Notes: generated by a model from the sequence alone, not told the origin. Positions 33,229 through 60,171 are shown, counted from the first letter of the stretch. The stretch: 64,000 nucleotides of DNA from Squalus acanthias (GCA_030390025.1 CM059443.1:50344001-50408000), one strand, 5' to 3'. A program made the numbers and translations.

Positions 33229-33234
33229 TTTATT
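33229..33234 (-). terminator. Poly(A) signal (AATAAA on -) of Ig-receptor copy A
   Basis: tttatt inside a block of about 110 bp that is nearly identical to 50190-50310. Confidence 0.6.
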
Positions 33235-33359
33235 GAATGACTTTCAATCGCACAAGTTCCATTTTGTGTCTCACACAGCAGCGATGCGTTATTCTATCTA
33301 AACAGAGTCCAAGGGGGTGAAATTGCTCTTCGCCAGTAGCGTGAAATTCATTACAAATC

Positions 33360-33560
33360 GATATTGGCCAGGACACCGGGGAGAACTCCCCTGCTCTTCT
33401 TCGAAATAGTGCAACGGGATCTTTTACATCACCTGAGAGAGCAGACGGGTCTCAGTTTAACGTCTCATCCGAAAGACGTCACCTCTGACAGTGCAGCACT
33501 CCCTCAGTACTGTACTGGAGTGTCAGCCTGGATGATGTGCTCAGGTCTCTGGAGTGCCAT
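33360..33560 (-). mobile_element. Partial Deu-domain SINE
   Basis: atattggccaggacaccggggagaactcc...tttaacgtctcatccgaaag. Confidence 0.75.
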
Positions 33561-34910
33561 TCAAATTTCTGCATATGCATTCTCAGCTTGTCTGAGATTC
33601 CACAGCGTGAGCGTGAATCCGTAACATCATCTCTACATGCTCCCACGTTTAGCATGGCTCCCTGTATTCTGCTCCAACACCGACACCAGCGTGATTTTCT
33701 GTTTCCCACACCAGCCGTCGCTACAGCTTCCCCATCCCCCCACCCCCGCCCGACTCACACTGGGAATTGAGTGCTGTGCTGTGAGACCATGTGTGAGAAC
33801 TGGGCTGGGCTGGACTGGGCAAAAACACATTTCGCGTCGCTATGCTGCAAGCAGTGGAGAGAGTAGACTGTCATCCAGGCATTCTGGACTGCATTCAAAG
33901 CCAGATGCCAGAGAGAAAAAGTGAAAGGGTATCGTGCTAAAACTGGCGCCAGCTTAGCACGGACTGGCACTCTGACCCAGAGAGGTCACAAGGTCAGGTG
34001 GTGTGGGAAAAGTTGTCTCTGCACCAAACCCGTGCTGTACCAGACCTGGGCCTGCTCGACACTGACACTGGGGCCTAGAAATTGGCTCCGGGTGCAGCAC
34101 ACACCGCACACACCCAATGGGGCTGGCGGCAGGAACACGGCACATTGGACCCCCGGCCTCATTAGTTTATCAGTAGCGAGTTGCAGGCTCCAGTCACGGC
34201 CCCAGAGGCAGCTCACAGGAGGAGGGAGCAGGATTGGCCGACTGGGACCTGAGCTGATTCCGGGATGGGTGGGGGGGGACAGAGGGATGAGGCAAATGGG
34301 AGGGGGACACGCGAGCGGTGTCTGGTAGTGGCTGACGGTTTTAATGTGGGGCCGGGAGGAGCACGCCTGCTTCCTCCTGATTCACATTCAGGTCAGGATT
34401 TGTTTTAAAACTTACTCTTTTGGTGGCGGCCTCCAGCGATCTCTGTAAGGACCCCTGGTTAGGCCTGGTGAGGCCGCGTGGAGACCTGGTCACCCTGAAT
34501 TCAGCAGGCCCAAGGCCGGCAGCGTTCAGGAAAAGTCAGTCTTCGGCTTGGGTCCTAGAACAAGCGGTAGGCCCCTCATTAGCATATTCAAGGTGCCTAA
34601 CGCCTGTTTCAGGCGATCGCCAGGGACGCCTCTACAGTGCCCAAACCAATAAGGCATCAGACGTGTTTCTGACGCTATTCGGGCATGGAGGGTTGGCCCC
34701 CTAAATTGGACCTTTTTTGCACCCATTATCCACCCAGAAAAACGGTGCAACGATGTCCAATTAACCCCCACCCCTGGTGTCTGCAGTGGGAAAATGTTCA
34801 ATACCCAGTGCTGACCATGATGAGTGTAAAATATAGGTATTTTTTAAATCTTGTACCACTATGAGTTTAAACAAGTTATCCGTGGCCTTTCTCCTGTTAC
34901 TCGATTATGC

Positions 34911-37511
34911 TCAGGTTTCCTCCATTTTAGCATAAATAGGATTTTCTTCCATTTTTAACGGGCCAGGTCGTGGATCATCTTCCTCCAGCTGGGACTGTGT
35001 CACCGTGTCTACCGGGCAGCCTATCAAAGAATAAATCTGCTCATTGGACAAAGCAACGGGATCCTCCTTACTGTCCTCTTTGGGCTGTGATTGGCCGCCT
35101 GGTTTGAGTTCAGTAGCTGAAGAGGTTTCAACCTGCCGTCCATGGTCCGTGTGGTCTCTGCCTAGATATTAAGAGAGGAGATCACGTTTGATGGGTTCAC
35201 TTCCAGTGGGGGACAGATAATGAAAGTGGACTGTCTCGTTACTTGAGATAAAGGTCCAGGAGCTTTAGAACAGACACAGTGTTGACTGAGAGGATTATAC
35301 TGAAAGATTGCAACGACTTACATTTTACTCCCTGGTTTTCAGTTTTGTCTCCATCACTAGGAAAACAGAAAATTAAACATGTGAATAATGAGTAACATAA
35401 GATTCAAACAATATTAAACCATTGTAAGTGGAGACTAGGTTAGGTCACTTTCTCCCCAGAGCCTGGATTTCAGTCCAGCCCAGACTGAAATTCTCTCATT
35501 CATTTTCTCTCTCTCTGTCTATCTCCCTCTGACTCTCTGATTGTCTCTCCGTCTCTCTTTCTCTCTGTCTCTTTCTCTGTCTCTCTCTCTCACTGTCTCT
35601 CTCTGCCTGTCTCTCTCTCTGTCTGTCTATCTCACTGTCTCTCTCGCTGTCTCTGTCTCTCTCCATTTTCTCTGTCTCTCTGTCTCTGTCTTTTCCCTGT
35701 CTCTAAGTCTGTCTCTCTCCCTGTCTCTCTCTGTCTGTCTATCTCACTTCTCTTTCGCTGTCTCCCTGTCTCTCTTCATTCTCTCTGCCTCTTTGTGTCT
35801 GTCATTCCCTCCCTGTCTCTATGTCTGTCTCACTATGTCTCTGTCCCTGACTCTCTCTCCCTGTCTCTCTCTCTTTCTCTCTGTCTGTCTCTCTCCCTGC
35901 CTCTCCCTTTCTCTCTCTGTCACTCTCTGTCTGTCTGTCTCTCTTACTCTGTGTTGCTCTCTCTCTGTCTCTCTCTCTTCCTATCTCTATCTCTCTTTGT
36001 CTCCCTCTCTCTCTCTCACTGTCTTTGCTGTGTGAGCAGTCCTCTCTGCAATGAGTTTTCACAGTTCCAATCCAGTTCCTTGCCTAAAACTGCGCATCAT
36101 TCAATAAAATATTTGGACTAAATTGAGCATTATGGTCAGATAAGCCAAATATTGTCCTGAGAAAGTTTAATAAAAATAACTTCACACGGGCACAGTGAAA
36201 GGAGCTATTCTGATGTTGGGATAAAGGAGCACTATCAGGTCAGAGGGCAGAGTGCTTTACACGGCCTCTAGCCATTCTATACCTGACTTAGAACTGTTCG
36301 GTTGTGAGATTGGCTGCACAGCCTGGAAATGTTTTATGCTGGATGGTGGAATAGATTAGTACGGCCCTTGATATTTTAGGATCTGCCAAGTCCAGATTAC
36401 TAGGAATAAAAGTCCTCTTTCTGTATCTCCCTGGTCTCTATCTCTGTCTGTCTCTGTCTCTTTCTCTCTAAGGGTCCTTGATGAAATGAATTTGGTCATC
36501 TTGTTCCAGTTTGTAGCTCATGTGAGCCACAGTACAAAACTACCCCAAAATTGTCACTTTCACTCAAACAGCCCATGAGTTGTGAGAAGTGAAAAGTCCG
36601 AGCTCCCTCCTGAGTTTGGAGTTGAGGAGCATTGTTGGGACAGTCCAGAGGGAGCTTTATGCTGCACCTAATCTGGAGTGCTCCAAATATGACTGTGTGG
36701 CCACAGTGGAAAAGTAACCCATTTGCAGAGTGGGCTCCCCTCACCTTCATTACATTAACAATCTCCGAACCCTCCATCCCAAAACAAACCCGTGGTCAGT
36801 GTTGAACGTTGCCGGGGCCGACAGCTGTCACTCTGCTTACCCTTTGACCATTGACTCTTCGATCAAACAGTACACATGCTCTGTAGAGTCAGACTTTGGG
36901 CCAGTGCTCTCCATTCCTTCACCAGGCCTTGGCTGGCTCGATGGCGTTGGAACTCTCGTCACCGAGTACGCAACATGCTCGTTGTCATCGCTCTGATCCC
37001 TTCTGGGAACCACAGAGTACGGGAAACCTAGACAGAAGGACGAGTAGACGATGTGTGCTTTTAGTTTCAACTCTCAAAGGGACAGGCTCGGAAGAGCTGG
37101 GCAGTAATTCTAGTCACTTACATTCAGCCACCTGTGTCAGCTGCACATCACCAGCCCTACAGTTAGCAAAGAAAAGCAACCTGTAAATGTTCCATTAAAT
37201 GAGGAAAACTATGCATAAAGTCTGCCCGAAAACTGAACGAATCCCATCCCTACCTGGGTCCTGGTGCTGAGGATCCTTCACAACACATGCCATAAGATTG
37301 GAAAGATAAATTTAAAAATCTTTGTAAGGAGTCTGCACTTACAATTTTCTAGATTTAGAGCAAACATTTTAAAGCACTTGCTTACCTTTGGCAGCTTGTC
37401 GTTTCCTGTGGATTATGCAAAGTGCCCCAACAATGCAAAGTACCCCAACAATGCAAATGATCACAACCGCACACACTATGGTTACTTTCACAGATGTGGC
37501 AGTGTCTGGAC
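34911..37511 (-). CDS. Ig-receptor copy A, TM plus cytoplasmic exons: complement(join(34911..35161,35322..35356,36841..37027,37122..37156,37254..37275,37386..37511))
   Basis: Six exons of 126, 22, 35, 187, 35 and 251 nt with GT-AG borders and matching phases (1-1-2-1-2-1) form one open frame: SPDTATSVKVTIVCAVVIICIVGVLCIVGALCIIHRKRQAAKGSSAPGPRAGDVQLTQVAECFPYSVV...VAYSVT...EHVYCLI...GDGDKTENQGVKCRDH...EQIYSLI...EENPIYAKMEET*. Confidence 0.82.
35505..36030. repeat. (CT/CTGT)n microsatellite in the copy A intron
   Basis: Direct inspection; a shorter paralogous tract lies at about 50965-51115. Confidence 0.95.
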
Positions 37512-40313
37512 CTGCAGAGGAGAAGCAACATTAAGTTCAGTCTGTGCAATCCCGTGTTATATGTACAGCTGATCACACTGGTTACCTGGGCTGAGGAACA
37601 GACATTTCCGGTTAGAATCTGGAATAGTGCAATGGCGAAGAAAGGAAATCGAACCAACTTTTAATGGGTACAAACTGGACAACTGATCTGGAATCTATTG
37701 TTGAGGCTGCCGCGAAACACGAATTAAGGCTGAATCCATGTGTGGAAAACAAGAGACTTTTTTAATACAACTGCATGGTACAAAATGGCTGAACAGACTG
37801 CTCCCAGAATTCTCTGGAAAAACCCTGAGGCCCCGCCCACTCCTGCCTTAAAGGGAATGTGCCTTAAAGGGAAGGTGATCGATATATTGTCCACGGACGG
37901 AAAAGTGGGTAATGCCCGTTTAGGTGGTGATCCGCCACACTATCAACTTTAATTTTTTTTATTCATTCATGGGATGTGGGCGTCATTGACAAGGCCAACA
38001 TTTATTGCCCATCCCTAATTGCCCTTGAGAAGGTGGTGGTGAGCCACCTTCTTGAACCGCTGCAGTCCATGTGGTGAAGGTACTCCCACAGTGCTGTTCG
38101 GGAAGGAGTCCCAGGATTTTGATCCAGCGACGATGAAGGTTCGGCGATATATTTCCAAGTCATGATGGTGTGTGACTTGGAGGGGAACTTGGAGATGATG
38201 GTGTTCCCATGCGCCTATTGCCCTGTCCTTCCAGGCGGTAGAGGTCGCGGGTTTGGGAGGTGCTGCCGAAGAAGCCTTGGCGAGTTGCTGCAGTGCATCT
38301 TGTAGCTGGTACACACTGCAGCCACGGTACGCCGGTGGTGGTGGGAGTGAATGTTTAAGATGTGGATGGGGTGCCAAACAAGCGGGCTGCTTTGTCCTGG
38401 ATGGTGTCGAGCGTCTTCAGTGTTGTTGGAGCTGCACTCATCCAGGTAAGTGGAGAGTATTCCATCACACTCCTTACTTGTGCCTTGTAGATGATGGAAA
38501 GTCTTTGGTGAGTAAGGAGGTGAGACACTCGCTGCAGAATACCCAGCCTCTGACCTACTCTTGTTGCCACAGTATTTATGTGGCTGTTCGAGTTACGTTT
38601 CTGGTCAATAGTGACCTCCAGGATGTTGATGGTGGGGGATTCAGCAATGGTAATGCCGTTGAATGTTAAGGGAAGGTGGTTAGACTCTTTCTTGTTGGAG
38701 ATGGTCATTGCCGGGCACTTATGTGGCGCGAATGTTTCCTGCCACTTATCAGCCCAAGCCTGAATGTTGTCCAGGTCTTGCTGCATGCGGGCATGGACTG
38801 CTTCATTATCTGAGGGGTTGCGAATGGAACTGACCACTGTGCAGTCATCAGCGAACATCCCCGCTTCTGACCTTATGTTGGAGGGAAGGTCATTGATGAA
38901 GCAGCTGAAGATGGTTGGGCCTAGGACACTACCCTGTGGAACTCCTGCAGTGATGTCCTGGGGCTGAGATGATTGGCCTCCAACAACCAGAACCACCTTC
39001 CTTTGTGATAGGTATGACTCCAGCCAGTGGAGAGTTTACCCCCTGATTCCATTGACTTCAATTTTACTCAGGATCCTTGATGCCACACTCGGTCAAATGC
39101 TGCCTTAATGTCAAGGGCAGTCACTCTCACCTCCCCTCTGGAATTCAGCTTTTGTCCATGTTTGGACCAAGGTTGTAATGAGGTCTGGAGCCAAGTGGTC
39201 CTTGCGGAACCCAAACTGGGCATCAGTGAGCAGTGCTGCTTAAAAGTACTATCGACAACACATTCCATCATTTTGCTGATGATTGAGAGTAGACTGATGG
39301 GGCGGGAATTGACCGTTTTGGATTTGTACTGCTTTTTGAAGACAGGACATACCTGGGCAATTTTCCACTTTGTCGGGTAGATGCCAGTGTTGTAGTTAAA
39401 CTGGAACAGCTTGGCTAGAGGTGCGGCTAGTTCTGGAGGACAAGTCTTCAGCACGACAGCCGGGATGTTGTCGGGGCCCATAGCCTTTGATGTATCCAGT
39501 GCGCTCAGACATTTCTTGATATCACATGGAGTGAATCCAATTGGCTGAAGACTGGCTTCTGTGATGGTGGGGACTGCAGGAGGAGGCCGAGATGAATCAT
39601 CCACTCACCACTTCTGGCTGAAGATGGTTGCAAACACTTCAGCCTTGTCTTTTGCACTCACATGCTGGGCTCTGACATCATTGAAATGGGGATGTGCATG
39701 GAAACTGCTCCCGTTAGTTGTTTAATGGTCCACCACTATTCACGATATGGCAGGACTGCAGAGCTTTGATCTGATCCATTGGTTGTGGGATCGCTTTACT
39801 CTGTCTATAGCATGCTGCTTCTGCTGTTTAGCATGCATGTATTGTAGCTTCACCAGGTTGGCACTTCATTTTTAGGTACGTCTGGTGCTGTTCCTGGCAT
39901 GCTCTTCTGCACTGCTCATTGAACCAGGGATGGTCCCCTGGCTTGATGTTATTGGTAGGGTGAGGGATATGTCGGCCCATGAGGTTACAGATTGTGGTGG
40001 AGTACAATTCTGCTGCTGCTGATGGTCCACAGTACCTCATGGATGTCCAGTTTTGAGCTGCTAGATCTGTTCTGAATCTATCCCATTTAGCACGGTGGTA
40101 GTGCCACACAACACGATGGAGGGTGTCCTCAGGGTGAAGACGGGTCCTTGTCTCCACAAGGACTGTGCGGTGGTCACTCTTACCAATACGGTCATGGACA
40201 GACGCATCTGCGACAGGTAGATTGGTGAGGACGAGGTCAGGTATGTTTTTCCCTCGTGTTGGTTCTTTCACAACCCGCCGCAGGCCCAGTCTGGCAGCTA
40301 TGTCCTTCAGGAC

Positions 40314-40820
40314 CTCATCTTTCACCTCATCTTTCGTTTAGGCACCCTACAGCCCTCTGGACTCAACATCGAGTTCAACAATTTCAGATCATAACCTCAG
40401 CCCCTTTCACATTTATATTTTATTTTTTCATCCACCCTTTTGTTTGGCCCCCCCTTTTTTTTCCCTCCCAGAAGCTGGCAGCTGTCCTTCATTCTGCCAG
40501 TGCATTTCACACTTCATTTAGCCTCAACCTGTTACACCAACACCTCCTCTTGCCTTGATTATCTCTTAATGTTTCTCAATGTCTCTTAATCACTCCTTTT
40601 GTTCTATCATCCCCTCCCCCTTTTCCCAGCTTTATACTTGTTTTATACTTGCTTTAAATCTATTTCATTTCCTGCTTTTTTCCAGTTCTGATGAAAGGTC
40701 TTCGACCTGAAACGTTAACTCTGTTTCTCTCTCCACGGATGCTGCCTGGCCTGCTGAGTTTTTCCAGTATTTTCTGTTGTTATTTCGGATTTCCAGCATC
40801 CGCAGTATTTTGCTATCGTA
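40314..40820 (+). mobile_element. Penelope-like 3' fragment with a 15-bp TSD
   Basis: TSD tatgtccttcaggac at 40299-40313 and 40821-40835; matches 54680-55159. Confidence 0.9.
40684..40720 (+). ncRNA. Minimal hammerhead ribozyme motif
   Basis: agtt-CTGATGA-a-aggtc-ttc-gacct-GAAA-cg-TT-aact. Confidence 0.8.
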
Positions 40821-41266
40821 TATGTCCTTCAGGACTTGGCCAGCTCCATCAGTAGCGGTGCTACCGAGCCACTTGGTGATGGATGTTGAAGTCGCCCACC
40901 CAGAGTACATTCTGTGCCCTTGCTACCCTCAGTGCTTCTTCCAAGTGGTGTTCAACGTGGAGGAGTACTGATTCATCAGTTGAGGGAGGGCGGAAGGTGG
41001 TAATCAGCAGGAGGTTTCCTTGCCCATGTTTGATCTGATGCCATGAGACCTCTTGGGGTCAGGGAGTCAATGTTGAGGACTCCAAGGGCCACTCCCTTCC
41101 GACTGTATACCACTGTGCTGCCACCTCTGATGGGTCTGTCTTGCCTGAGGGACAGGCCATACTTAGGGATGGTGATGGAGGAGCCTGGGACATTTCGTGA
41201 AAGAATTATTTATATTAAATTATTTATATTAAATGAGTCGCATTGTTTCTAGATTGTATCACTTAC

Positions 41267-41457
41267 TTTGAGTATTTGTAGGAGTTAAGCTGCTGGTCAC
41301 TGAGGAGATTCCAGATGTTGAGGTGGGGGTGTCTGAAGTCTCTGCACTCGCCTCTGTCACAGTAAGGGAGATGTATGCTGCAATCTTCCAGACACGTTTC
41401 CCTGAATCCTGACTGTGGACAGCACAGAGATACCTCCCAGTGTCCACCACATCCGCT
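41267..41457 (-). pseudogene. Copy A truncated V-set/stalk exon (3' half only)
   Basis: ADVVDTGRYLCAVHSQDSGKRVWKIAAYISLTVTEASAETSDTPTSTSGISSVTSSLTPTNTQ then donor gtaagt. Four substitutions versus 55900-56090. The 5' half is replaced by LINE sequence. Confidence 0.9.
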
Positions 41458-43033
41458 AATGAATCAGTACTTTGCCTTGTTGAACACCACTTGGAAGAAG
41501 CACTGAGAGTAGCAAGGGCACAGAATGTACTCTCGGTGGGGGACTTCAATGTCCATCACCAAGAGTGACTCGGTAGCACCACTACTGACCGAGCTGGTCG
41601 AGTCCTGAAGGACATAACTGCCAGTCTGGGCCTGCGACAGGTGGTGAGAGAACCAACACGAGGGAAAAACTTACTTGACCTCGTCCTCACCAATCTACCT
41701 GTCGCAGATGCATCTGTCCATGACAGTATTGGTAGCAGTGACCACCACACAGTCATTGTGGAGACGAAGTCCCATCTTCACACTGAGGACACCCTCCATC
41801 GTGTTGCGTGGTACTACCACCGTGCTAAATGGGATAGATTCAGAACAGATCTAGCAGCTCAAAACTGGGCATCCATGAGGCGCTGTGGGGAAGCAGCAGA
41901 ATTGTATTCGACCACAATCTGTAACCTCATGGCCCGGCATATCCCTCACTGTACCATTACCACCAAGCCAGGGGACCTACCCTGGTTCAAAAAGGAATGT
42001 AGAAGAGCATGCCAGGAGCAGCATCAGGCGTACCTAAAAATGAGGTGCCAACCTGGGGAAGCAGCAACACAGGACTACATACATGTTAAAAAACGGAAGC
42101 AGCATGCTATAGACAGGGCTAAGTGATCCCACAATCAACGGATCAGATCAAAGCTCTGCAGTCCTGCCACATCCAGTCGTGAATGGTGGTGGACAATTAA
42201 ACTACTAACTGGAGGAGGAGGCTCCATGAATATCCCCATCCTCAATGATGGTGGAGCCCAGCACGTGAGTGCAAAAGGCAAGGCTGAAGTGTTTGCAGCC
42301 ATCTTCAGCCAGAAGTGCCGAGTGGATGATCCACATCGGCCTCCTCCTGAGGTCCCCACCATCACAGAAGCCAGTCTTCAGCCAATTCGATTCACTCCAC
42401 GTGATATCAAGAAATGGCTGAGCGCAGTGGATTCAGCAAAGGCTATGGGACCTGACAACATCCCGGCTATCGTGCTGAAGACTTGTCTTCCAGAACTAGC
42501 CGCACCTCTAGCCAAGCTGGTCCAGTACAGGTACAACACTGGCATCTATCCGACAATGTGGTAAACTGCCCAGGTATGTCCTGTCCACAAAAAGCAGGAG
42601 AAATCCAATCTGGCCAATTACCGCCCCATCAGTCTACTCTCAATCATCAGCAAAGTGATGGAAGATGTCATCGACAGTGCTATTAAGTGGCACTTACTCA
42701 CCTATAACCTGCTCACTGATGCCCAGTTTGGGTTCCGCCAAGACCACTCTGCTCCCGACCTCATTACAGCCTTGGTCCAAACATGAACAAAAGAGCTGAA
42801 TTCCAGAGGTGAGGTGAGAGTGACTGCCCTTGACATCAAGGCAGCATTTGACCGAGTGTGGCATGAAGGAGCCCTAGTAAAACTGAAGTCAATGGGAATC
42901 AGGGTGAAAACTCTCCACTGGCTGGAGTCATACCTAGCACAAATGAAGATGGTTGTGGTGATTGAGGGTCAATCATCACAGTCCCAGGACATCGCTGCAG
43001 GAGTTCCTCAGGGCAGTGTCCTAGGCCCAACCA
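41455..43033 (+). mobile_element. LINE family 2 fragment (duplicate of 27845-29397)
   Basis: Paralogous ORFs 41641-43044 with the same 3' breakpoint. Confidence 0.9.
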
Positions 43034-43640
43034 TAAGAACGTAAGAAATAGGAGCAGTAGTAGGCCATTCAGCCCTTCGAGCTTGCTCCGCCATTCAATG
43101 AGATCATGGCTGCTCTTCTGCCTCAACTCCATTCACTGGCCCTATCGCCATATCCCTTGATGCCCTTACTAGTCAGAAATCTATCGACTTCTGTTTTGAA
43201 TATACCCAATGACTGAGCCTCCACAGCCCTCTGGGGTAGAGAATTCCAAAGATTCACCACCCTCTGTGTGAAGAAATTTCTTCTCATCTCAGTCCTGAAT
43301 GGCCTACCCTTTATCTTGTGGCTGTGGCCCCTGGTTCTAGACTCCCCAGCCAAGGGAAACATTCTCCCAGCATCCATCCTATCAAGCCCTGTAATAATTT
43401 TGTATGCTTCAATGAGATCCCCTCTCATTCTTCTGAATTCAAGAGAAACAGGCCTAGTTTACTCAATCTCTTCTCATACGACAGTCTCGCCATCCCAGGA
43501 ATCAATCTCGTGAACCTTCGTTGCACTCCCTCTATGGCAAGTATATCCTTCCTTAGGTAAAGAGACCAAAATTGTACACAGTACTCCAGGTGTGGTCTCA
43601 CCAAGACCCTATATAATTGGAGTAAGACTTCTTTACTGGA
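43033..43640 (-). mobile_element. CR1 3' fragment (duplicate of 29397-30000)
   Basis: ORF 43123..43428. Confidence 0.9.
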
Positions 43641-43667
43641 GTGGAGCTGTGGTCATTGTTTGGTGTG

Positions 43668-43907
43668 ATTGCCGTGATTATCTCTCTGCCGAGGTGTGAT
43701 AAAGGGCAGTTAGAAAGATTAACTGTAATCATCTGGCAGTGTTCTCTGACTATATATGCTGTGCCGAAATACATCTCTTCACTTCACCTGACGAAGGGGC
43801 AGCAGCTCCGAAAGCTTGTGATTTCAAATAAAACTGTTGGACTATAACCTGGTGTTGTGCGACTTCTCACATTTGTCCACCCCAGTCCAACACCGGCATC
43901 TCCACAT
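43668..43907 (+). mobile_element. Insertion of about 240 bp with a 15-bp TSD and hammerhead motif (Penelope-type terminal fragment, different family)
   Basis: TSD tcattgtttggtgtg on both sides; the empty site is at about 30016 in the paralogue. Confidence 0.8.
43784..43821 (+). ncRNA. Minimal hammerhead ribozyme motif (different stem sequences)
   Basis: tcac-CTGACGA-a-ggggc-agca-gctcc-GAAA-gc-TT-gtga. Confidence 0.75.
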
Positions 43908-49669: not shown

Positions 49670-50040
49670 GAGCCCTAGGAACAGGAGGAGGCCATTCAGC
49701 CCTTGGAGCCTGCTCCATCATTCAATGAGATCATGGCTGATTTGTACCTCAACTCCATCTACCTGCCTTTGCACCATATCCCTTGATACACTCGCCTAAC
49801 AAAATCTATCGATCTCAGTCTTGAAAGCTCCAATTGTCCCCCAGCATCCACAAGCTTTTGGGAGAGAGAGTTCCAGATTTCTACTACCCTTTGTATGAAA
49901 AAGTAGTTCCGATTTCACTCCTAAATGGCTGAATCTAAGCTTTCAAGATTATGTCCCCTTGTTCTTCATAGTTTCTCTGTATCTACCCTTTGAATCATTT
50001 TAACATTATAATCTTCTACACTCAAGGGAATACAAGACAA
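49670..50040 (-). mobile_element. CR1 3' fragment
   Basis: CR1 3'UTR motif (aggccattcagccc...agatcatggctga). Confidence 0.75.
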
Positions 50041-50215
50041 GTCCTTGGGCACCAATCAGTGTTGGGAGCCCTGCTGATCTTTCTCCTCTCTAACCCAGGG
50101 GCACTGAGTCTGATTGTAGTGTCCTCACTGAGATCAGTTCATTCATTCAATTAATTTTGCAGAAAAAAATCCTGCTGGACAGATGCCACAGTTTAGTTAT
50201 AGTTTTTAAACAGTG

Positions 50216-50221
50216 TTTATT
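50216..50221 (-). terminator. Poly(A) signal (AATAAA on -) of Ig-receptor copy B
   Basis: Paralogous to 33229-33234. Confidence 0.6.
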
Positions 50222-50634
50222 GAATGACTTTCAATCACACAAGTTCCATTTTGTGTCTCACACAGCAGCGATGCGTTGTTCTATCTAAACAGAGTCCAAG
50301 GGGGTGAAATTCATTTCCATCAAAGTCGAAACTGGCGAGGACCAATTTCTGCCCCGAGCATGTAGCCGTTACATTCTTCAACTGTGGGTTCCCATCGCCC
50401 ACATCCCGTGTCGGTGAGAGTGGAAATCTCACGTTGAATCTGTCTCCGTGTTTTGTGTCGGTCGTCACAAAACTTCAGAACAGTCTGTGAACGCCAAGGA
50501 GCTGACGCCAGCGGTTTAATATAATTAGCGGAACATTGGGAGAAGATTTCTCCGCACACAATCCTGCGCTTCAAGCAGCCTCAGTGTTACAATCTGTGAA
50601 AACACACTTGCATTCGAGGGGGGCCGGTTGCGCA

Positions 50635-51298
50635 CCTGCCGTCCATGGTCCATGCGGTCTCTACCTAGATATCAAGAGAGGAGATCACGTTTGATGGGTT
50701 CACTTCCAGTGGGGGACAGATAATGAAAGCGGACTGTCTCGTTACATCAGATAAAGCTCCAGGAGCTTTAGAACAGACACAGTGTTGGCTGAGAGGATTA
50801 TACTGAAAGATTGCAATTACTTACATTTTACTCACTGAATTTCACTTTTGCCTCCATCACTAAGAATACAGAAAATGAAACATGTGAAGCATCAGTAACA
50901 TAAGATTCAAACAATAATAAACATCTGTAAATGGATTTGCTATTTTTAACCCCTGGATTTGAATCCGTCTCTCTACTCTTCAATTTTCGCTCTCACCATC
51001 TCCCATCACTCTCCCTTGCCCTCACTCGCCCTCTATCTCTCCCTCCCTCCTTTCTCTCTCTCTCTATGTCTGTCTCTCTCACTCTACCCCTCTCTCCATC
51101 CCTCCTCCTCTCTCTGGACTGTAAGGGTAATTTAGGAAATGATTTACATTCAGCTTCCTGTGTCAGCCACACATTAGCCTCCTACAGTTATTAAAGAAAT
51201 GCAACTGGTAAATGTTTCATTGAATGAGAAAAACTAAACAGAAAGTCTGAATGAAAACTGAGTGAATCACATCCCTGCCACTACCGATGCTGAGGATC
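50635..51298 (-). CDS. Copy B residual short cytoplasmic exons (51285-51298, 51148-51181, 50825-50859, truncated last exon), tyrosine-free
   Basis: Paralogues of the copy A small exons. One in-frame path gives GSSASEANVWLTQEAELMEAKVKFSE*. The donor at 51284 is weak, so the exact tail is uncertain. Confidence 0.5.
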
Positions 51299-52661
51299 CT
51301 TCATAAAAATAAATAACGGGGGGAACTTACTAGATTTAATATAAGTTTTAAAAACGGTAATGGAGAAAATAATGGGACTTAAGTTTGACAAATCTCCAGG
51401 ATCTGATGGCTTCCACCCCAGGGAATTAAAAGAAGCAGGTGAGGAAATTGCAGATACTCTAGTCATGATCTTCCAAAACTCTCTTGATTCAGGAATTGTC
51501 CCCTTGGATTGGAATACTGCCAAATGTTACTCCATTATTTCAGCAGGGTGGGAGAGAGAAACCAGGAAATTATAGACCTATTCGTCCAACGTCTGTTGTG
51601 GGGAAGTTACTAGAATCTGTTACTGGGGACAGAGCAACTGAGCACTTGGACAAATATGAGTTGACCAGAGAGAGCCAGCATGGATTGGTAAAGGGTATGT
51701 CAGGTCTAACTAACCTCGTTGAATTTTATGAGGAGATCACTAACGTGGTAGATAAGGGAGTGTACATGGATTTTAGATGGACTTCCAGAAGGCATTCAAT
51801 AATGTTCCACACAAGACACTCTTAGCAAAAATGAAAGCACATGGCTATTGACAAGGCTAGGGAATTGGTTAGGAGGTTGGAAGCTGAGAGTAGGGATAAT
51901 GGGTAATATACTCCAATTGGCAGGATGTGACTACTAGTGTCTCCCAGAGATCTGAACTGGGGCCTCAGATTTTCACTATATTTATAAAAAAAGACTTAGA
52001 TAAAGGAATAGAGCGCCAAATATCCAAGGTTGCTGACAACACGGAGTTAGGTGCCACAGTAAGTAGTGTTGTCAAGGGATGTTGACAGATTAAGTGAGTT
52101 GGCAAAACTGGCAGATGGGGTTCAGTGTAGGGAAGTGTGAGGGGATCCACTTTGGACCGAAGAAAGATAGGTCAGAATATTTTCTAAATGGTGAGAAGAT
52201 AGGAACTGTGGAGGAGCCGAGAGATTTCGGGGTCCAAGTACAGAAATCACTAAAAAGCTAAAAACAGGGACAAAAAAGAATTAAAAAGGCGAATAGAAAG
52301 TTAGCTTTATCTCAAGTTAGCTGGAATACAAAAGAGTAGATGTTATGCGACAGTTGTATAAAGCTTAGGTGAGACCACATCTGGAGTGCTGTATTGAGTT
52401 CTGGGCACTGCACCTCAGGAAGGACATACTGGCCTTAGAAGGGGTGATACTGGGGCTAAAAGGGTTAAATTACGAGGACAGGTTGCAGAGACTAGGCTTG
52501 TATTCCCTCGAGTATAGAAGATTAAGGGGTGATCTGATTGAGGTGTTTAAGATGATATAAGGATTTGATAGGGTGGATAGAGAGAAAGTATTTCCTCTGG
52601 TGGAGGAGTCTAAAACAAGGCGGCATAACCTTAAAATTAGAGCCAGGCACTTTAGGGGTGA

Positions 52662-54749
52662 GCTTGGCACGATGCTGAGCTCTTTTTCCGCCGCCTCCGT
52701 CTCCGTGCCCACTTCTCTGGCCAGGAGTCTTCCCCCCGCACGGCTGACCCTTTCTCCCGCTTTCAGAATTCTCGTTCCACCTGGACCCCTCCCTCTGGCC
52801 TCTTACCCTCTCTAGATCTTTTCATTGCTAACTGCCGCCGTGACATCGGCCAGCTCAATTTCTCTGCTCCCCTCACTCACTCCAACCTACCTCCCTCTGA
52901 ACTTGCAGCACTCCATTCTCTCCGATCCAACCCTGACATTGTCATTAAACCTGCTGACAAGGGTGGCGCTGTTGTTGTTTGGCGAACCGACCTCTACCTA
53001 GCGGAAGTTGAACGCCAACTCTCTGACACCTCCTCCTACCTCCACCTGGACCATGACCCCACTACTGAACATCAAGCCACCGTGTCCAAGACCGTCACTG
53101 ACCTCATCTCCTCTGGAGATCTTCCCCCCACGGCTGCCAACCTCATAGTTCCCCAACCGCGCACAGCCCGCTTCTACCTCCTTCCCAAGATCCACAAACA
53201 GGACTGCCCCGGTAGACCCATCGTTTCAGCCTGTTCTTGCCCCACAGAACTTATCTCTTCCTATCTCGACTCTATTTTTTCTCCCCTTGTCCAGTCTCTT
53301 CCCACCTACATCTGCGACTTTTCCGATGCCCTCCGCCATTTTAACAGTTTCCAGTTTCCCGGCCCCAACCGTCTCCTCTTCACTATGGACGTACAATCCC
53401 TCTACACCTCCATTCCCCACCAGGATGGCCTGAGGGCGCTCCGCTTCTTCCTTGAACAGAGGCCCAACCAGTCCCCATCCACCACCACCCTCCTCCGCCT
53501 GGCTGAACTTGTTCTCACATTGAACAACTTCTCCTTTGACTCTACCCATTTCCTCCAAATTAAAGGTGTTGCTATGGGTACCCGCATGGGTCCTAGCTAT
53601 GCCTGCCTTTTCGTGGGATATGTGGAACACTCTTTGTTCCAGTCCTACTCGGGTCCCCTCCCTCACCTCTTTTTCCGGTACATTGATGACTGTATCGGTG
53701 CCGTCTCCTGCTCTCGCCCTGAACTAGAACATTTCATTCACTATGCTTCCAATTTCCACCCTTCCCTCACCTTCACATGGTCCATCTCCGACTCTTCCCT
53801 TCCCTTCCTCGACTTCGCCATCTCCATCTCTGGGGATAGGTTATTGACTAACATTCACTACAAGCCCACTGACTCCCACAGCTATCTGGACTACACTTCC
53901 TCCCACCCCGCCTCCTGTAAGGACTCTATTCCATTCTCCCAGTTTCTCCGTCTCCGCCGCATCTGCTCTGATGATGCCACCTTCCATACCAGTGCTTCCG
54001 ACATGTCTTCCTTTTTCCTCAACCGAGGATTCCCCTCTACCGTGGTCGACACGGCCCTCGACCGTGTCCGTTCTATCTCCCGCACTTCTGCCCTCACCCC
54101 TGCCCCTCCCTCCCGGAACCACGATAGGGTTCCCCTTGTCCTCACCTTTCACCCCACCAGCCTCCACATTCAACGGATCATCCTCCGCCATTTCCGCCAC
54201 CTCCAGCGTGATCCCACTACCAAACACATCTTCCCCTCACCTCCCCTTTCAGCATTCCGCAGGGACCGCTCCCTCCGCGACACCCTAGTCCACTCCTCTA
54301 CCACCCCCAGCACCCCTTCCCCTTCGCCCGGCACCTTCCCGTGCACGCGCAGGAGATGCAACACATGCCCTTACACCTCCCCTCTTCCCACTGTCCAGGG
54401 CCCCAAACACCCCTTCCAGGTGAAACAGCGATTTACTTGTACTTCCTGCAATTTAGTATACTGTATTCGCTGCTCACGATGTGGTCTCCTCTACATTGGG
54501 GAGACCAAACGCAGATTGGGTGACCGCTTTGCGGAACACCTCCGTTCAGTCCGTAAGGGGGACCCCGAGCTCCCGGTGGCCTGTCACTTTAATTCACCGC
54601 TTCACTCCCACTCTGACCTCACCGTCCTCGGCCTATTACACTGTTCCACGGAAGCGCAGCGTAAGCTCGAGGAACAGCACCTCATCTTTCGTTTAGGCAC
54701 GCTACAGCCCTCTGGACTCAATATCGAGTTCAACAATTTTAGATCATAA
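52662..54749 (+). CDS. Penelope RT plus GIY-YIG endonuclease (frame open from the insertion edge; includes ORF 53082..54749)
   Basis: KPADKGG, YLLPKIHK, GRPIVS, MDVQSLYT, GVAMG, RYIDD, Cys-rich linker CTRRRCNTC, and VYCIRCSRCGLLYIGETKR (GIY-YIG). Confidence 0.95.
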   Translation, partial: AWHDAELFFRRLRLRAHFSGQESSPRTADPFSRFQNSRSTWTPPSGLLPSLDLFIANCRRDIGQLNFSAPLTHSNLPPSELAALHSLRSNPDIVIKPADKGGAVVVWRTDLYLAEVERQLSDTSSYLHLDHDPTTEHQATVSKTVTDLISSGDLPPTAANLIVPQPRTARFYLLPKIHKQDCPGRPIVSACSCPTELISSYLDSIFSPLVQSLPTYICDFSDALRHFNSFQFPGPNRLLFTMDVQSLYTSIPHQDGLRALRFFLEQRPNQSPSTTTLLRLAELVLTLNNFSFDSTHFLQIKGVAMGTRMGPSYACLFVGYVEHSLFQSYSGPLPHLFFRYIDDCIGAVSCSRPELEHFIHYASNFHPSLTFTWSISDSSLPFLDFAISISGDRLLTNIHYKPTDSHSYLDYTSSHPASCKDSIPFSQFLRLRRICSDDATFHTSASDMSSFFLNRGFPSTVVDTALDRVRSISRTSALTPAPPSRNHDRVPLVLTFHPTSLHIQRIILRHFRHLQRDPTTKHIFPSPPLSAFRRDRSLRDTLVHSSTTPSTPSPSPGTFPCTRRRCNTCPYTSPLPTVQGPKHPFQVKQRFTCTSCNLVYCIRCSRCGLLYIGETKRRLGDRFAEHLRSVRKGDPELPVACHFNSPLHSHSDLTVLGLLHCSTEAQRKLEEQHLIFRLGTLQPSGLNIEFNNFRS

Positions 54750-55026
54750 CCTCAGCTCCAATCACATTTATATTTTATTTTTTCCACCCTTTTATTTGCC
54801 CCCCCCCACCTTTTTTTTCCTCCTAGAAGCTGGCAGCTGTTCTTCATTCTGCCAGTGGATTTCACACTTCTTTCAGCCTTAATCTGTCACATTAACACCA
54901 CCTCTAGCCTTGCATATCTCTTAATGTCTCTTAATGTCTCTTCATCTCCCCCTTTGTTCTTTTATCCCCTCCCCCTTTTCCCAGCTTTACTCTGGCCTTA
55001 AATCTATTTGATTTCCGGCTCTTCAC

Positions 55027-55063
55027 AGTTCTGACGAAAGGTCATCGACCTGAAACGTTAACT
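55027..55063 (+). ncRNA. Minimal type I hammerhead ribozyme motif in the Penelope 3' region
   Basis: agtt-CTGACGA-a-aggtc-atc-gacct-GAAA-cg-TT-aact: stems I and II pair and stem III is the palindrome AACGTT. Ribozymes of this type are known in Penelope-like elements. Confidence 0.8.
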
Positions 55064-55538
55064 CTCTTTCTCTCTCCACGGATGCTGCCTGGCCTGCTGA
55101 GTTTTTCCAGCGTTTTCTGTTGTTATTTCAGATTTCCAGCATCCGCAGTATTTTGCTATCACTTTAGGGGTGATGTCAGGAAGCACTTCTTCACACAAAG
55201 GGTGGTGGAAATCCGGAACTTGCTCCCCCCAAAAAGCTGTTGAGGCTGAGGGTCAATTGAAAATTTCAGAACTGAGATTGGTAGATGTTTATCAGTTAAG
55301 GGTATGAAGGCATATGGAACCAAGGCGGGTAAATGGAGTTAGGTCACAGATCAGCAATGATCAAATTGAATGGCGGAACAGGCTCGAGGGGCTGAATGGC
55401 CTCCTTCTGTTCCTATGTCGCTATGGTCACAGTAAATGTGATAAGATCAGAACTATGAATTTAAAAATCATTGTAATAAGTCTGTACTTAAATATAATTT
55501 TCCGGATTTAGATCAAACATTTTAAAGCTCTTGCTTAC

Positions 55539-58500
55539 CCTTGGCAGCTTGCCGTTTCCTTCGGATTATGCAAAGTGCCCCATCAATGCAAACTAGCACA
55601 ACCAAGTACAGAACCAAAACACACATACGTATGTCACTGCAGCTGGTGTAAGGACCTGCAGAGGAGAAGCAACATTAAGTTCAGTCTGTGCAATCCCGTG
55701 TTATATGTACAGCTGATCACACTGGTTACCTGGGCTGAGGAACAGACATTTCCGGTTAGAATCTGGAATAGTCCAATGGCGAAGGAAGTAAATCAAAGCA
55801 ACTTATAACGGCTACAAACTGTACAACTGATCTGGAATCTCTCAGTTTGAATTATTGATATTAAAAGATTCACATCATATTCTAGATTGTATCACTTACT
55901 TTGAGTATTTGTACGAGTTAAGCTGCTGGTCACTGAGGAGATTCCAGATGTTGAGGTGGGGGTGTCTGAAGTCTCTGCACTCGCCTCTGTCACAGTAAGG
56001 GAGATGTTTGCTGCAATCTTCCAGACAGGTTTCCCTGAATCCTGACAGTGGACAGCACAGAGATACCTCCCAGTGTCCACCACATCCGCTGAGTGAATAG
56101 TAAGGTTGTGAGACTGGCGTCTAGCAGTAGGATTGTCTGAGCTTTGGGCAGAGATTCTTTGTGACGACCTTCTGTCCACACAGCGTGTGTTAATTTTTGC
56201 CTCATAACCCTCAATGTGAACAGAGTGCAGACACTTGTTGACGTTTCCAGATCTGATCCAAAACAGAGTGAAGGCGAGGTTTTTTGTATTCTCAAACTGG
56301 CAGGGTAAAGCCACATTTGCTCCCTTTGACACTGTCAGCGACCAGGAGTTTTCTTCAGTAGAAAATATTTCATCTGAATCTATAAACAACATTGAAAAGA
56401 ACCTTTGTTACTAATTATTTAGAAGTGCTGTTCCCACATGTTATCCAGCTGTTTGATGTAAGTGTGAGTCTGACTGTAACTAGCTGTATTATCAGCAGTG
56501 GAGACAGCAGGCGTGGGCCAGGGCCAAATCCTTGTTTGGAATATTTGTCTGATTTTCCCACCGTTAGATTAAACATTCCCCAGCTAGAGGCAGATTGTGT
56601 AAGATCAGGAAACACTCGGGGACTGAGAGCAAGGAGCGAGAAGACAGGACAAATAATGAAAGATCGAACACACAAAGGCAAAAGACAGGGGCAGACACTA
56701 AAGGACAGAGACAAGGGGGGGAGACTTCAAACTCGCTTCTCTGTATCTCGATACCTGGGAATTTTATCCACCCCACCCCCCCCCCGCCCCGCCCAGATAT
56801 TTCCCCAATACCTCCCCTGATACCTCCCCCGATATTGCCCCAGTACACGTACCACTCTGGATTATCACAAAGAACAAGTCGTGGTTTTCACTTCCCTCTC
56901 CTGACAGTGTGAGCCAGGACGGACACTTCGATGATCCTCCTTCTGTGGAATCCTGAGCCGAGCAGGTAAATACCATCGAGTTAAACGTCTTCACATCGAA
57001 TGTCAGAGACTGAGACTCCGTTTGTTCTTCATTTAATTTGCATTTTCTACACTCTGGCTTACTCTGCCTGTTTGTCCAATTAGGACTGATATTTTCACAA
57101 AATTGCATTTCCTTCTCTTTATTCTCACATGTATTGTCAATTTCTGCTCCGAGATCAGTGAAGCTGCACAAGGTGACTTCATCCCCAGCACCAGTGGTCA
57201 CGTTGCACTGCAGAGTGGTGACATCTCCTGGTCCTCGGGAGAAGAGATAAGTGGATCCTGCAGGGAAAGGGCAGAATCGGATAGAGATAAATAACATTCC
57301 ACACAGGAAAGATCATTAAACACTCAATGTGACACAAGCCTCTCACAGTAAATGAGCCTAGATAGACCCCCACCACCCCCTTTACACATTGTGATAGACT
57401 GCCCTCCCATTACACAGTCTGAATCCAGTCCACACCACCCCCTCTCCCTGCCTCCATCACACAGGCCTGGACAGAGATCCCACCCCCACCATAACACATT
57501 CTGACCGAGACCTCACCCCCATCCCCATCATAGCCTGAATAGAGACCCCCCACCCTTTCACTGAGCCTGACTACAGTCATACATAGTACATAGGTTGAGG
57601 TTATTGGAAGTCAATCATCTCAGCTCCATGACATGGCTGCAGGAGTTCCTCAGGGCAGTGTCAAAGCCCAACCATCTTCAGCTGCTTCATCAATGACCTT
57701 CCCTCCATCATGAGGTGACACGTGGGACTGTTCACTGATGATTGCACAGTGTTCAGCTCCATTTCCAATTCCTCAGATAATGAAGCAGTCCGTGCCTGCA
57801 TGCAGCAAGACCTGGACAACATCCAGGCTTGGGCTGATAAGTGATAAGTAACAGTCACACCACATAATGACCATCTCCAACAAGAGAGAGCCTAACCACC
57901 TGCCCTTGACATTTGATGGCATTACCATCATCGACTCTCCCACCATTAACATCCCGGGGTCATCATTGACCAGAGACTTAGCTGCAACAACCACATAAAT
58001 ACTGTGGATACTAGGGCAGCTCAGAGGCTGGGTAGTCTGCGGCAAGTGGCTCACCTGACTCCCCAAAGCCTTTCCACCACCTATAAGGCACATGTCAGGA
58101 GAGTGATGAAATGCTCTCCACTTACGTGGATGAGTGCAGCTCCAAAAACACTCAGGAAACTCAACACCATCCAGGACAAAGCAGTCCACTTGATCGGCTC
58201 CCTATCCGTCCCCTTAAACATTCACTCCCTCCACCACTGGCGCACCATGGCTGCAGTGTGTACCATCTACATGATAGTACCTCGCCAAGGCTTTTACGGC
58301 AGTATCTCCCAAACCCCTGACCTTCACCACCTATAAGAACAAGGGCAGCAGGTGCTTGGGAACACCATCACCTCCAAGTTTCCTTAAAAGTCGCACAACA
58401 TTCTGATTTGGAAATATATTGCTGTTCCTTCATTGTTGCTGGGTCAAAATCCTAGAATTGGCTACCTAACAGCATTGTGGAGCACCTTCACCATTTGGAG

Positions 58501-60171
58501 TGCAGAAGAAAGGCCAAACCCAACTGACCTTCTCAATGGCAACTAGGGATTGGGCAATAAATGCCGGAATTGCCAGTGACACCCACATCCCGAAGAAAGA
58601 TAAAATAAATATGAAGTAATCATCCACTTAATGAGGGAACTTAATTTAAGACGTGGCATTGAATACTGGTTCCTAACTTTCAGGGAGATTATAATAACTG
58701 ATAATTGGTGTGAGGACATTAGTTAGTCCTGTAAAAGGAAAACTTCTGGGTAAATATTATCTTTTTAGTTGGGGTTTCTGTAGAAGGAGGGAATTAGCTG
58801 AAGTTGAATGGTGCAGACCAGAGAGATATTTATAATTGAAAGTATCACTTGATGGAGAGCAATTATATGTAACAAGAGCCGAATTATTTATAAGGTAATG
58901 AAGTAGAGTTATACCAATCTCATTAGCCGAATGGAAAAAGAGCTCGTTATTTAGGAAACCAGCAGTTAGGTAAAGTTATCGATAAGAACTCAGTTCAATT
59001 AGACTCTCCTTATATGGAGTTGTTTTTCAATGCAGAAATGTGCAAATTGTCACATAGTCGGAGTGAGGGGTAAGTACAAAAAGTGGCAGAGTGTAATCAG
59101 TATTTGGATTCGAAGGGGTTTGATTGGCCTAAAACACTGAACATTAACGCGTTTGAGTCGCCAGCCATCAGCTCTTGTAAGTTCTTGTGGTTCTTTGCCA
59201 GAATCAACTCACGGCCTCGCTCTCCCCACAGTGCTCCTGTCTCTTTCACAACTTCAAATGTTTATCCAATTCTCACTTAAATGATAGAATCATAGAATCA
59301 TAGAAAGTTACTGCACGGAAGCAGGCCATTTCGGCCCATCGTGTCTGCGCCGGCCAACAAAGAGCTATCCAGCCTAATCCCACTTCCCAGCTCTTGGTCC
59401 GTAGCCCTGCAGGTTACAGCATCCCAAGTGCACATCCAAGTACTTTTTAAATGTGGTTAGGCTTTCTGCCTCTACCACCCTTTCAGGCAGTGAGTTCCAG
59501 ACCCCCACAACCCTCTGGGTTAAGAAATTCCCATCAAATCCCCTCTAAACCTTCCACCAATGACTTCAAATCTGTGCCCCCTGGTTTTTGACCCCTCTGC
59601 TAAGGGAAATAGGTCCTTTTTGTCCACTTTATCTCGGCCCCTCATCATTTTATACACCTCAATAAGGTCTCCCCTCAGCCTCCTCTGTTCCAAGGAAAAC
59701 AAACCCAGCCTATCCAGTCTTTCCTCATAGCTAAGATTCTCTACTCCCGGCAACATCCTTGCAAATCTCCTCTGTACCCTTTCTAGTGCAATTATATCTT
59801 TCCTGTAATGTGGTGACCAGAACTGCACGCAGTACTCTAGCTGAGGCCTAACTAGTGTTTTATACAGTTGATAAGATCCAAAGCTCTCTGCCTCAACCAT
59901 TCGCTGTGGTAAAGCATTCTCTGCTCCAACAACATTTCTCCTAACGTCTCTCCTCACTGTCTTAGTGCCATTTTTAAACTGATGACCCATGATTAAACCG
60001 TGTTAAAATGCCACAGCAAGGACTGTGATGCGAGCACATTAAACATATTCACAAGAACACCACTGTTTTATATCCTTATCCTATGCTGAAGATTAACTGA
60101 AAGTATTAATCCTTACCTGTAACATGTTGGAACAGAAGGAAAAGACCCACAAACACAGCACCGAGCGCCAT
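55539..60171 (-). CDS. Ig-superfamily type I receptor copy B: complement(join(55539..55655,55900..56379,56853..57257,60117..60171)) = signal peptide, Ig1, V-set Ig2 plus stalk, charged TM
   Basis: All introns are phase 1 and GT-AG. Leader MALGAVFVGLFLLFQHVT. Ig2 has LPC..LFW..LTI..DTGRYLC. TM exon reads SPYTSCSDIRMCVLVLYLVVLVCIDGALCIIRRKRQAAK. An alternative in-frame acceptor exists at 56373. Confidence 0.85.
57595..58600 (+). mobile_element. LINE family 2 3' fragment, decayed
   Basis: gcaggagttcctcagggcagtg through the tail cccacatcccgaagaaa. Confidence 0.85.
59283..59875 (-). mobile_element. CR1 3' fragment
   Basis: ORF 59520..59990; (CATAGAAT)n tail. Confidence 0.9.

Follow-up and report, generated by a model that had tools for sequence, protein, structure and literature searches.

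The question raised by positions 33229-60171 of a 64,000-nucleotide stretch of Squalus acanthias DNA (GCA_030390025.1 CM059443.1:50344001-50408000; this whole stretch is called the window below) is whether they hold a pair of immune receptor genes with opposite signalling ends. Paired activating and inhibitory receptors are central to the control of natural killer (NK) cells and myeloid cells in mammals, and very few paired receptor families are, to our knowledge, known from cartilaginous fish, the oldest jawed vertebrates. An initial annotation of the window had described two immunoglobulin (Ig) receptor copies here, one with a charged transmembrane (TM) segment and a short tail (copy B) and one with a neutral TM segment and a long tail (copy A). 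We consider it probable that the region belongs to a multigene cluster of sharks encoding an unnamed type I receptor of the Ig superfamily, which occurs in two signalling forms, with copy B as a complete gene and copy A as a 3' part. The limits given for the locus fitted the exons found, with the leader of copy B starting at 60171 and an AATAAA for copy A at 33234.

The short-tailed and the long-tailed copy

Copy B spans 60171-50828 on the minus strand, where copy A also lies. It was mapped by tblastn with shark homologue proteins, its boundaries were read directly, and it was intact. The gene codes for a leader, a Cys-rich Ig-like domain (D1), a V-set domain with a Ser/Thr stalk, a TM exon, and a tyrosine-free tail in this order. 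Window sequences were analyzed exon by exon. All splice sites of copy B were canonical, the acceptors being AG after a pyrimidine tract and the donors GTAAG or GTACG, and the junctions among the leader, D1, V/stalk, and TM exons were all in phase 1. Exon 1 (60117-60171), found by tblastn with shark homologues, holds the ATG and the signal peptide (MALGAVFVGLFLLFQHVTG) and ends in phase 1 at the donor GTAAGG. Exon 2 (56853-57257; 405 nt, 135 codons, phase 1-1) codes for D1 with eight cysteines and matched no Pfam family. Exon 3 (55900-56379; 480 nt, 160 codons, phase 1-1) codes for the V-set domain and the Ser/Thr-rich stalk, and was 64-73% identical to shark homologues in general and 70-73% to Heptranchias. 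The initial annotation had named the domain as V-set, and Pfam agreed (PF07686, 34.4 bits against a cut-off of 26, E 2.7e-8).

Exon 4 (55539-55655; 117 nt, phase 1-1) encodes the TM segment with Arg and Asp, followed by RRKRQAAK; its product reads SPYTSCSDIRMCVLVLYLVVLVCIDGALCIIRRKRQAAK, and the TM segment was noted as ...SDIRMCVLVLYLVVLVCIDGALCIIRRKRQAAK. The hydrophobic stretch comprises 21 residues, with the Arg at its outer edge and the Asp inside the core, and another Asp stands two residues before the edge Arg. The terminal coding exon (50825-50859) is the mini exon of the family. Its entry phase is 1, not 2, and the resulting VMEAKVKFSE ends with a stop at 50830-50828. A remnant of the last exon of the family (50525-50664) could be used as an alternative tail of 46 residues, with ATTAAA at 50520 and AATAAA at 50221. 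Neither tail contains a tyrosine, so that the charged TM segment and the short tyrosine-free tail claimed for this copy were both found.

Copy A spans 41457-34911 and consists of the remainder of a V/stalk exon, a TM exon, and a complete tail. The V/stalk remainder (41267-41457) is the last 191 nt of the exon only, covering the F-G strands and the stalk up to a donor GTAAGT, and its upstream end is cut by sequence resembling a long interspersed nuclear element (LINE). The TM exon (37386-37511, phase 1-1) has no charged residue in the TM core and continues with HRKRQAAK. Four further exons precede the last one: x1 (37254-37275, phase 1-2, SSAPGP), which matches A-type proteins of Pristiophorus, Heptranchias, and Scyliorhinus; x2 (37122-37156, phase 2-1, RAGDVQLTQVAEC); t1 (36841-37027, 187 nt, phase 1-2), which carries FPYSVV, VAYSVT, and HVYCLI and is without a counterpart in copy B; and the mini exon (35322-35356, phase 2-1, DGDKTENQGVKC). 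The last coding exon (34911-35161) carries QIYSLI and NPIYAKM and ends with the stop TGA at 34913-34911. All six exons from the TM exon to the last were open, with canonical sites and fitting phases. By summed exon lengths the tail has about 180 residues, and its five tyrosines lie in exactly the five motifs that had been listed for it. The TM exon also contains an in-frame 18-nt tandem duplication adding six TM residues (CIVGVL CIVGAL), similar to that in Pristiophorus A-type proteins and not seen in the other sharks.

The two copies had been thought to share a near-identical V-set/stalk exon. This was the case only for 41457-41267, where 186 of 190 aligned bases were identical to copy B; upstream of the break, in the LINE-like repeat, 44 of 90 bases matched, which is the chance level. 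The four differences in the shared part all change amino acids, a number too small to test for excess. Searches of the whole 64-kb window by tblastn and word-7 blastn gave no other copy of the leader, of D1, or of the V exon's first 289 nt (best exon matches E 0.64 or worse), and copy A thus misses the leader, D1, and about 60% of the V exon. Because only the last 191 nt of the V exon are kept and the window has no second set of 5' exons, copy A as read here is a 3' gene portion, not a full paralogue, and alone it most likely makes no receptor. Further downstream, the intron just before the two TM exons was identical at 110 of 110 bases, the acceptor included. The TM exons themselves differed in the core (37 of 63 bases identical, plus 9 gap columns) and were similar in the rest (50 of 55).

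A second shark has a headless A-type copy. In the annotated gene Heterodontus francisci XP_067871421-24, each of the three isoforms begins with a Met that lies within the V exon (MDTGRYLC...) and has an A-type TM segment and tail; the gene adjoins the complete A-type gene XP_067871420.

The break in copy A adjoins a LINE fragment on the plus strand (41452-43667) with reverse-transcriptase-like open reading frames (ORFs), 96% identical to 27915-30030 in self-BLAST. The fragment belongs to a colinear repeat, 27843-35432 against 41452-50935, and the two whole units are colinear over 27843-41469 and 41452-56102 with 83-100% identity in blocks. Of the two breakpoints, one is within the V exon and one within the LINE. 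Copy A could instead be complete in the real genome, with its truncation arising from assembly collapse or misjoining in a repeat-rich, recently duplicated cluster. The break falls exactly at the edge of a LINE copy with a 96% identical counterpart 13.6 kb away, and colinearity of the units extends for about 8 kb, with 89-99.5% identity; misassembly is a known hazard in such places. The window, however, is repeat-rich eukaryotic DNA without a run of N, the V/LINE junction reads through without a gap, and the structure is what a tandem duplication with these two breakpoints is expected to leave. We therefore regard an assembly error as very doubtful.

Another explanation makes the region one transcription unit with two alternative signalling cassettes. 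Transcripts would run from the leader of copy B to its V/stalk exon, and then use either the TM exon of copy B or, by read-through beyond the poly(A) sites of copy B, that of copy A 18 kb downstream, so that a single ectodomain would serve either signalling end. The phases allow this, since all junctions are in phase 1 and the V donor at 55900 would join the copy A TM acceptor at 37511 in frame. The identical intron bases with their acceptor point in the same direction, as do the open TM and tail exons of a copy without its own leader, D1, and complete V. Gene models in other sharks are also compatible with it: NCBI models in Heptranchias merge neighbouring family units, and the Heterodontus model joins starts inside the V exon to an A-type tail. 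Copy B, on the other hand, has its own stops and poly(A) signals (those at 50520 and 50221), placed in the block homologous to the 3' end of copy A; the path from V to the copy A TM exon would cross about 9 kb of nested repeats; and other sharks do have complete A-type genes, each with a leader, D1, and V of its own. On balance we find such a shared unit unlikely, and we prefer to read the region as a part of a multigene cluster.

Two signalling forms across sharks

Whether the short-tailed (B-type) and long-tailed (A-type) forms make up a pair was examined at the level of the family. In sharks, the A-type combines a neutral TM segment with a tail of about 180 residues that bears conserved tyrosine motifs, and the B-type combines an Arg-bearing TM segment with a short tail lacking tyrosine. 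Among the retrieved proteins, both forms were present in seven sharks: Heptranchias, Mustelus, Hemiscyllium, Stegostoma, Heterodontus, Scyliorhinus torazame, and Pristiophorus. In a tree of V domains (20 rows), sequences grouped by species, and the A and B labels needed nine changes each. V identity was 85.2-100% in 11 within-species A/B pairs, against a between-species mean of 64.7-65.0%. In a tree of TM segments (21 rows), A and B separated with a single change and support of 100/99, and none of 500 label shuffles gave a value as low. The window B sequence fell among the B-types, 84% identical to Pristiophorus B, and window A fell among the A-types. The TM tree rests on 38 columns, and its inner forks are weak. 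Rows absent from the V tree were Heterodontus A (whose V is not full), Cetorhinus, the two Chiloscyllium species, and additional isoforms of Pristiophorus and Heptranchias. The same rows are absent from the TM tree, except that Heterodontus A and window A were added.

V domains clustered by species together with TM segments clustered by type are, as far as sequences can tell, the signature of paired receptors, and the A and B forms are shown by these trees to be old and orthologous across sharks. We infer that the contrast between V and TM would result from recurrent gene conversion under selection that keeps the TM core from being converted. Homogenised ectodomains beside a protected TM difference are a pattern known for KIR, SIRP, Siglec, and CEACAM pairs. 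The claim of a paired receptor locus thus stood at the level of the family, where both forms occur in seven species with the identities given above, and not at the level of the window, which lacks two complete paralogues. The closely similar ectodomains of two genes are likewise a finding of the family; in the window, copy A retains 191 nt of V/stalk and neither leader nor D1.

All eight B-type TM segments, from eight species including the window, contain the Arg, and the deeper polar residue was Asp in five, His in two, and Asn in one. The Arg would pair with an adaptor bearing immunoreceptor tyrosine-based activation motifs (ITAM), such as FcR-gamma, CD3-zeta, or DAP12, and lead to cell activation. 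The A-type would signal via phosphorylated tyrosines, whose motifs of the ITIM-like YxxV/I, NPxY, and YxxM kinds (ITIM stands for immunoreceptor tyrosine-based inhibitory motif) would recruit SH2 or PTB proteins, and the net effect would probably be inhibition or a mixture. The ectodomains of A and B in one species are kept near identical, whereas their TM cores stay different.

The short tail can be traced to the exon order of the long one. After the TM exon, which ends in phase 1, A-type genes have x1, x2, t1 (ending in phase 2), a 35-nt mini exon leading from phase 2 to phase 1, and the last exon. No counterparts of x1, x2, and t1 were found in copy B by tblastn and mapping of shark homologues. 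Because these three exons are absent, the mini exon of copy B is entered one base out of frame and runs to a stop. The last exons of the two copies are homologous for 13 codons only. The shifted tail was annotated in four other species, as VMEAKLKSRE in Heptranchias, VMEAKVKSRE in Pristiophorus, VMEANVKFRK in S. torazame, and VTEANVKFKN in Mustelus. The Heptranchias form with the shifted tail is X4, and tails resembling the 46-residue remnant type occur in Heptranchias X1/X3 and in Heterodontus B-type models. The mini exons of both window copies have a stop in the +1 frame, so that skipping of t1 in an A-type transcript would also yield a short tyrosine-free tail. The long and short tails could therefore be switched by splicing as well as by gene.

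The tyrosine motifs of the long tail were compared with the definitions in bioRxiv 10.1101/2022.04.21.489081, with (S/I/V/L)xYxx(I/V/L) as the canonical ITIM. None of the five tyrosines of copy A lies in a canonical ITIM or immunoreceptor tyrosine-based switch motif (ITSM). Three are ITIM-like (FPYSVV, HVYCLI, and QIYSLI), there is one YxxM inside NPIY, and VAYSVT fits no motif class. Among shark A-type proteins, 6 of 12 have a canonical ITIM at the first motif, and NPxY is present in all 12. The first A-type motif continues a signature, EC-x-P-Y-(A/S)-V, of the bony-vertebrate relatives, and the tail tyrosine motifs are conserved from sharks to monotremes.

Several points weigh against reading the family as an activating and inhibitory pair. 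The word inhibitory, used for copy A in the initial annotation, was an inference, and an inhibitory role of the A-type is unproven, because copy A is without a canonical ITIM or ITSM and only half of the shark A-types have a canonical ITIM. Moreover, YxxM and NPxY are motifs that activating or adaptor pathways can use too. The Arg of copy B may be juxtamembrane instead of buried, since it stands at the very edge of the hydrophobic stretch with an Asp two residues earlier, and Asp in a TM segment is typical of adaptors, not of receptors. Copy B has lost two conserved cysteines, which could be a first sign of decay. The open exons of copy A, together with an intron 100% identical to copy B beside the TM exon, fit a copy that is still used or recently truncated as well as a dead one.

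The protein might then be no paired immune receptor at all. It would act at the cell surface in adhesion or in some other way, and its short-tailed form would have arisen by splicing or decay and would couple to no adaptor. The lack of canonical ITIM or ITAM in copy A is compatible with this, and so are the solved relatives by sequence profile, which are generic Ig domains only, and the distant bony-vertebrate relatives examined, which all have long tails and neutral TM segments. A decay product, however, would not be expected to form one clade with an invariant Arg across eight species including the window, which indicates conservation. The homogenised ectodomains beside a protected TM difference resemble KIR, SIRP, Siglec, and CEACAM pairs, and the conserved tail tyrosines also speak against it. 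We judge this alternative quite improbable, and we retain the reading of a two-form receptor.

The ectodomain and its relatives

The extent of the family was estimated by searches with the window exons. In a full HMMER scan with the V exon, 71 proteins scored E 0.001 or better; the number was 19 at a limit of 1e-10 and 4 at 1e-30. A profile search gave 32 proteins at E 1e-5 or better among 4594 candidates. Relatives were present in at least 13 shark species. Full-length shark homologues with the same architecture were found in Heptranchias, Mustelus, Rhincodon, Stegostoma, Hemiscyllium, Heterodontus, Scyliorhinus torazame, Carcharodon, Cetorhinus, two Chiloscyllium species, and Pristiophorus; Pristiophorus and Heptranchias were the closest to the window sequences in the trees. 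More distant relatives with the same layout of D1, V-set, TM, and tyrosine tail came from sturgeon, teleosts, frogs, newt, turtles, lizards, alligator, echidna, and platypus. A search with the echidna member matched only itself and one platypus protein among 2435 candidates.

The members share a signature of a Cys-rich Ig-like D1 ending in ...FF(I/V)V and a V-set domain with W-x8-9-C and (C)C, D-x-G-x-Y-x-C, and a W in the G strand, and the exons of copy B align to it. In an alignment of 45 sequences, the columns W192, C201, D254, G256, Y258, C260, and W272 were invariant. The sequences were chosen from 89 proteins, and those set aside were near-duplicates, short fragments, fused models, and proteins that seemed to belong to other Ig families. 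The same exon-by-exon architecture as in the window gene was seen in Pristiophorus japonicus (UniRef UPI00398F8CE3, B-type; UPI00398F31E1, A-type), Heptranchias perlo (XP_067829354-57, B-type; XP_067829442, A-type), and Mustelus asterias (LOC144480428, B-type; LOC144480561, A-type). The shark relatives and the window have in common the B-type TM segment with Arg/Asp, the shifted tail VMEAK..., and the A-type motifs FPYSVV, VAYSVT, HVYCLI, xxYSLI, and NPIY. The public shark relatives are computer models without a name or studied function; they keep the two cysteines lost in copy B, and the A-type genes among them keep the 5' exons missing from copy A. The Heptranchias B-type models XP_067829354-57 have two D1-V units in tandem before the TM segment, which may be a true double ectodomain or may come from the merging of two adjacent genes.

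The source names of the relatives were uncharacterized, hypothetical, or Ig-like domain-containing, with two exceptions. One was "serine-rich adhesin for platelets-like" for Heptranchias models fusing two ectodomains, and the other was "Programmed cell death 1 ligand 1", given by one submitter to a protein of the Komodo dragon. Both names look spurious. The literature searched held no description of the family; the supplement of the NILT preprint might list atypical Ig domains akin to those of the teleost members. The initial annotation had called the locus undescribed and had placed it in cartilaginous fish. The first part stood insofar as no description was found and the relatives have no valid functional name, whereas gene models of family members are already present in NCBI annotations and the family extends from sturgeon to monotremes. 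Taken together, these comparisons indicate that the family is real and conserved, without a name or study found, and that it has the hallmarks of a paired receptor family.

Domain and structure searches agreed with the claim that the ectodomain cannot be assigned to a named family. Pfam gave only generic Ig models for the V-bearing second domain (D2) and no match for D1 and the tail exons, and searches of the PDB by sequence and by profile gave only generic Ig or V-type matches. The ESM Atlas clusters matched by D1, at 0.90-0.93, were unnamed or generic V-set. For the Mustelus B-type protein, the AlphaFold2 model based on the 45-sequence alignment had a mean predicted local distance difference test (pLDDT) of 80.7 and a predicted template-modelling score (pTM) of 0.73, with a beta-rich D1. 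Foldseek with this model returned proteins with two V-type domains (single-chain variable fragments (scFv), JAML, CD226, and pIgR) at TM-scores of 0.31 or less.

Cysteines may link the two domains. At the last D1 cysteine, which stands in G-x-G-C-E in other sharks, copy B has Ser, and in the V domain it has a single Cys for CC; the two cysteines lost are kept in all 19 other shark rows of the V-domain set. Across the 45 sequences, the D1-end Cys and the second Cys of CC were both present in 30, both absent in 12, and the D1 Cys alone was present in 3 and the CC alone in none, a count inflated by relatedness. Because the two cysteines are present or absent together, this distribution suggests an interdomain disulfide between D1 and V, lost as a pair in copy B; this loss of both in copy B is an independent event that fits such a bond.

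Known receptor families were then compared. Receptors of the CD300, TREM, NKp44, and pIgR type, with their fish relatives (NILT, skate and zebrafish MDIR, and carp SITR), are alike in having a V-set domain, a stalk, a TM segment, and multigene clusters with activating and inhibitory forms, and one pIgR-like fish protein was among the weak matches (E 1.6e-12). D1, in contrast, has no counterpart in CD300/TREM/NKp44/pIgR-type receptors. PMC3031540 describes SITR with an N-proximal non-V Ig domain and a C-proximal V domain, a rare order common to the shark family. V domains of the CD300/TREM/pIgR/NILT/MDIR group have an internal Cys pair, Cx3C or Cx6-9C, and WC(R/K) in strand C, according to bioRxiv 10.1101/2022.04.21.489081 and PMC3031540. 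By these motifs, membership in CD300, TREM, pIgR, NILT, MDIR, or SITR was ruled out: the window V reads FWIRSGNVNKC...NTRC, with no Cys after the Trp and the inner cysteines 16 residues apart.

Membership in two other groups was also excluded. The V domain of NITR has a J-like GxGT motif, and there is no G.GT in the V exon of copy B. A Siglec/CD22-like receptor was rejected on PF24518 (21.4 bits against a cut-off of 27) and on the position of the V-set domain, which is membrane-proximal instead of N-terminal.

As to signalling, FcalphaRI, NKp46, LILRA/PIR-A, and GPVI of the leukocyte receptor complex are FcR-gamma-coupled receptors with C2-type domains; their tail is short, and their TM segment has one Arg, placed towards its outer end. 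By analogy, the B-type would resemble them in the short tail and in the Arg near the extracellular TM end, which is present in every B-type. Their ectodomains are unrelated, being D1 plus V-set against C2-type, and the B-type TM segment has an extra polar residue deeper inside. KIR, SIRP alpha/beta, Siglec-11/16, and CEACAM1/3 are alike in near-identical ectodomains within a species, in opposite TM segments and tails that are orthologous between species, and in sharp identity boundaries at the TM exon. They have no sequence relation to the shark family beyond the Ig fold, and the long tail in the window differs in having no canonical ITIM and in ending with NPxY/YxxM.

Duplication history, other repeats and significance

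A single recent tandem duplication as the whole history of the locus was ruled out, since B-type features are common to other shark orders, whereas identity between flanks in the window is as high as 83-100%. The history therefore requires gene conversion or unequal crossing-over as well.

The window also contains repeats apart from the receptor exons. An apparently intact LINE lies at 21332-25260 on the plus strand; its ORF1 (314 aa) has a GDSL/SGNH esterase domain, and its ORF2 (978 aa) contains an AP-endonuclease as well as a reverse transcriptase (Pfam E 2.3e-34). This LINE may still be active. In the intron of copy B between the TM and mini exons, a 555-aa ORF at 53082-54749 (plus strand) gave weak reverse-transcriptase and GIY-YIG matches, both below the Pfam cut-offs, and resembles a Penelope-like retroelement. 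At 587-1053, where the window is richest in GC, a GC-rich tandem repeat of 67 bp occurs in seven copies with 95% matches. The segments 16928-18057 and 19647-20776 form a direct repeat of 1.13 kb with 99.9% identity, the copies being 2.7 kb apart.

A wider reading can be proposed for the family, unlikely though we hold it to be as a whole. It would be an ancient, undescribed family from sharks to monotremes, apparently lost in therian mammals, with a unique Cys-rich D1 disulfide-linked to the V-set domain and a conserved EC-x-P-Y-(A/S)-V tail. Pairing in sharks would have come about via the loss of three small tail exons, whose frameshift would convert the long-tailed form to an activating form with Arg in the TM segment, and the headless A cassette downstream of the intact B-type gene may be an alternative 3' end that connects one ectodomain to both outputs from a single promoter.

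What the locus can say is limited, as the gene models are already public, the long-tailed copy in the window is incomplete, and the reading rests on sequence. Within these limits, the orthologous A and B forms across both main shark lineages, together with a traceable route from the long tail to the short one, would offer a test of how far back adaptor-coupled pairing goes. The spread of relatives from sturgeon and teleosts to amphibians, reptiles, and monotremes, all without a functional name, points to a neglected receptor of vertebrates.

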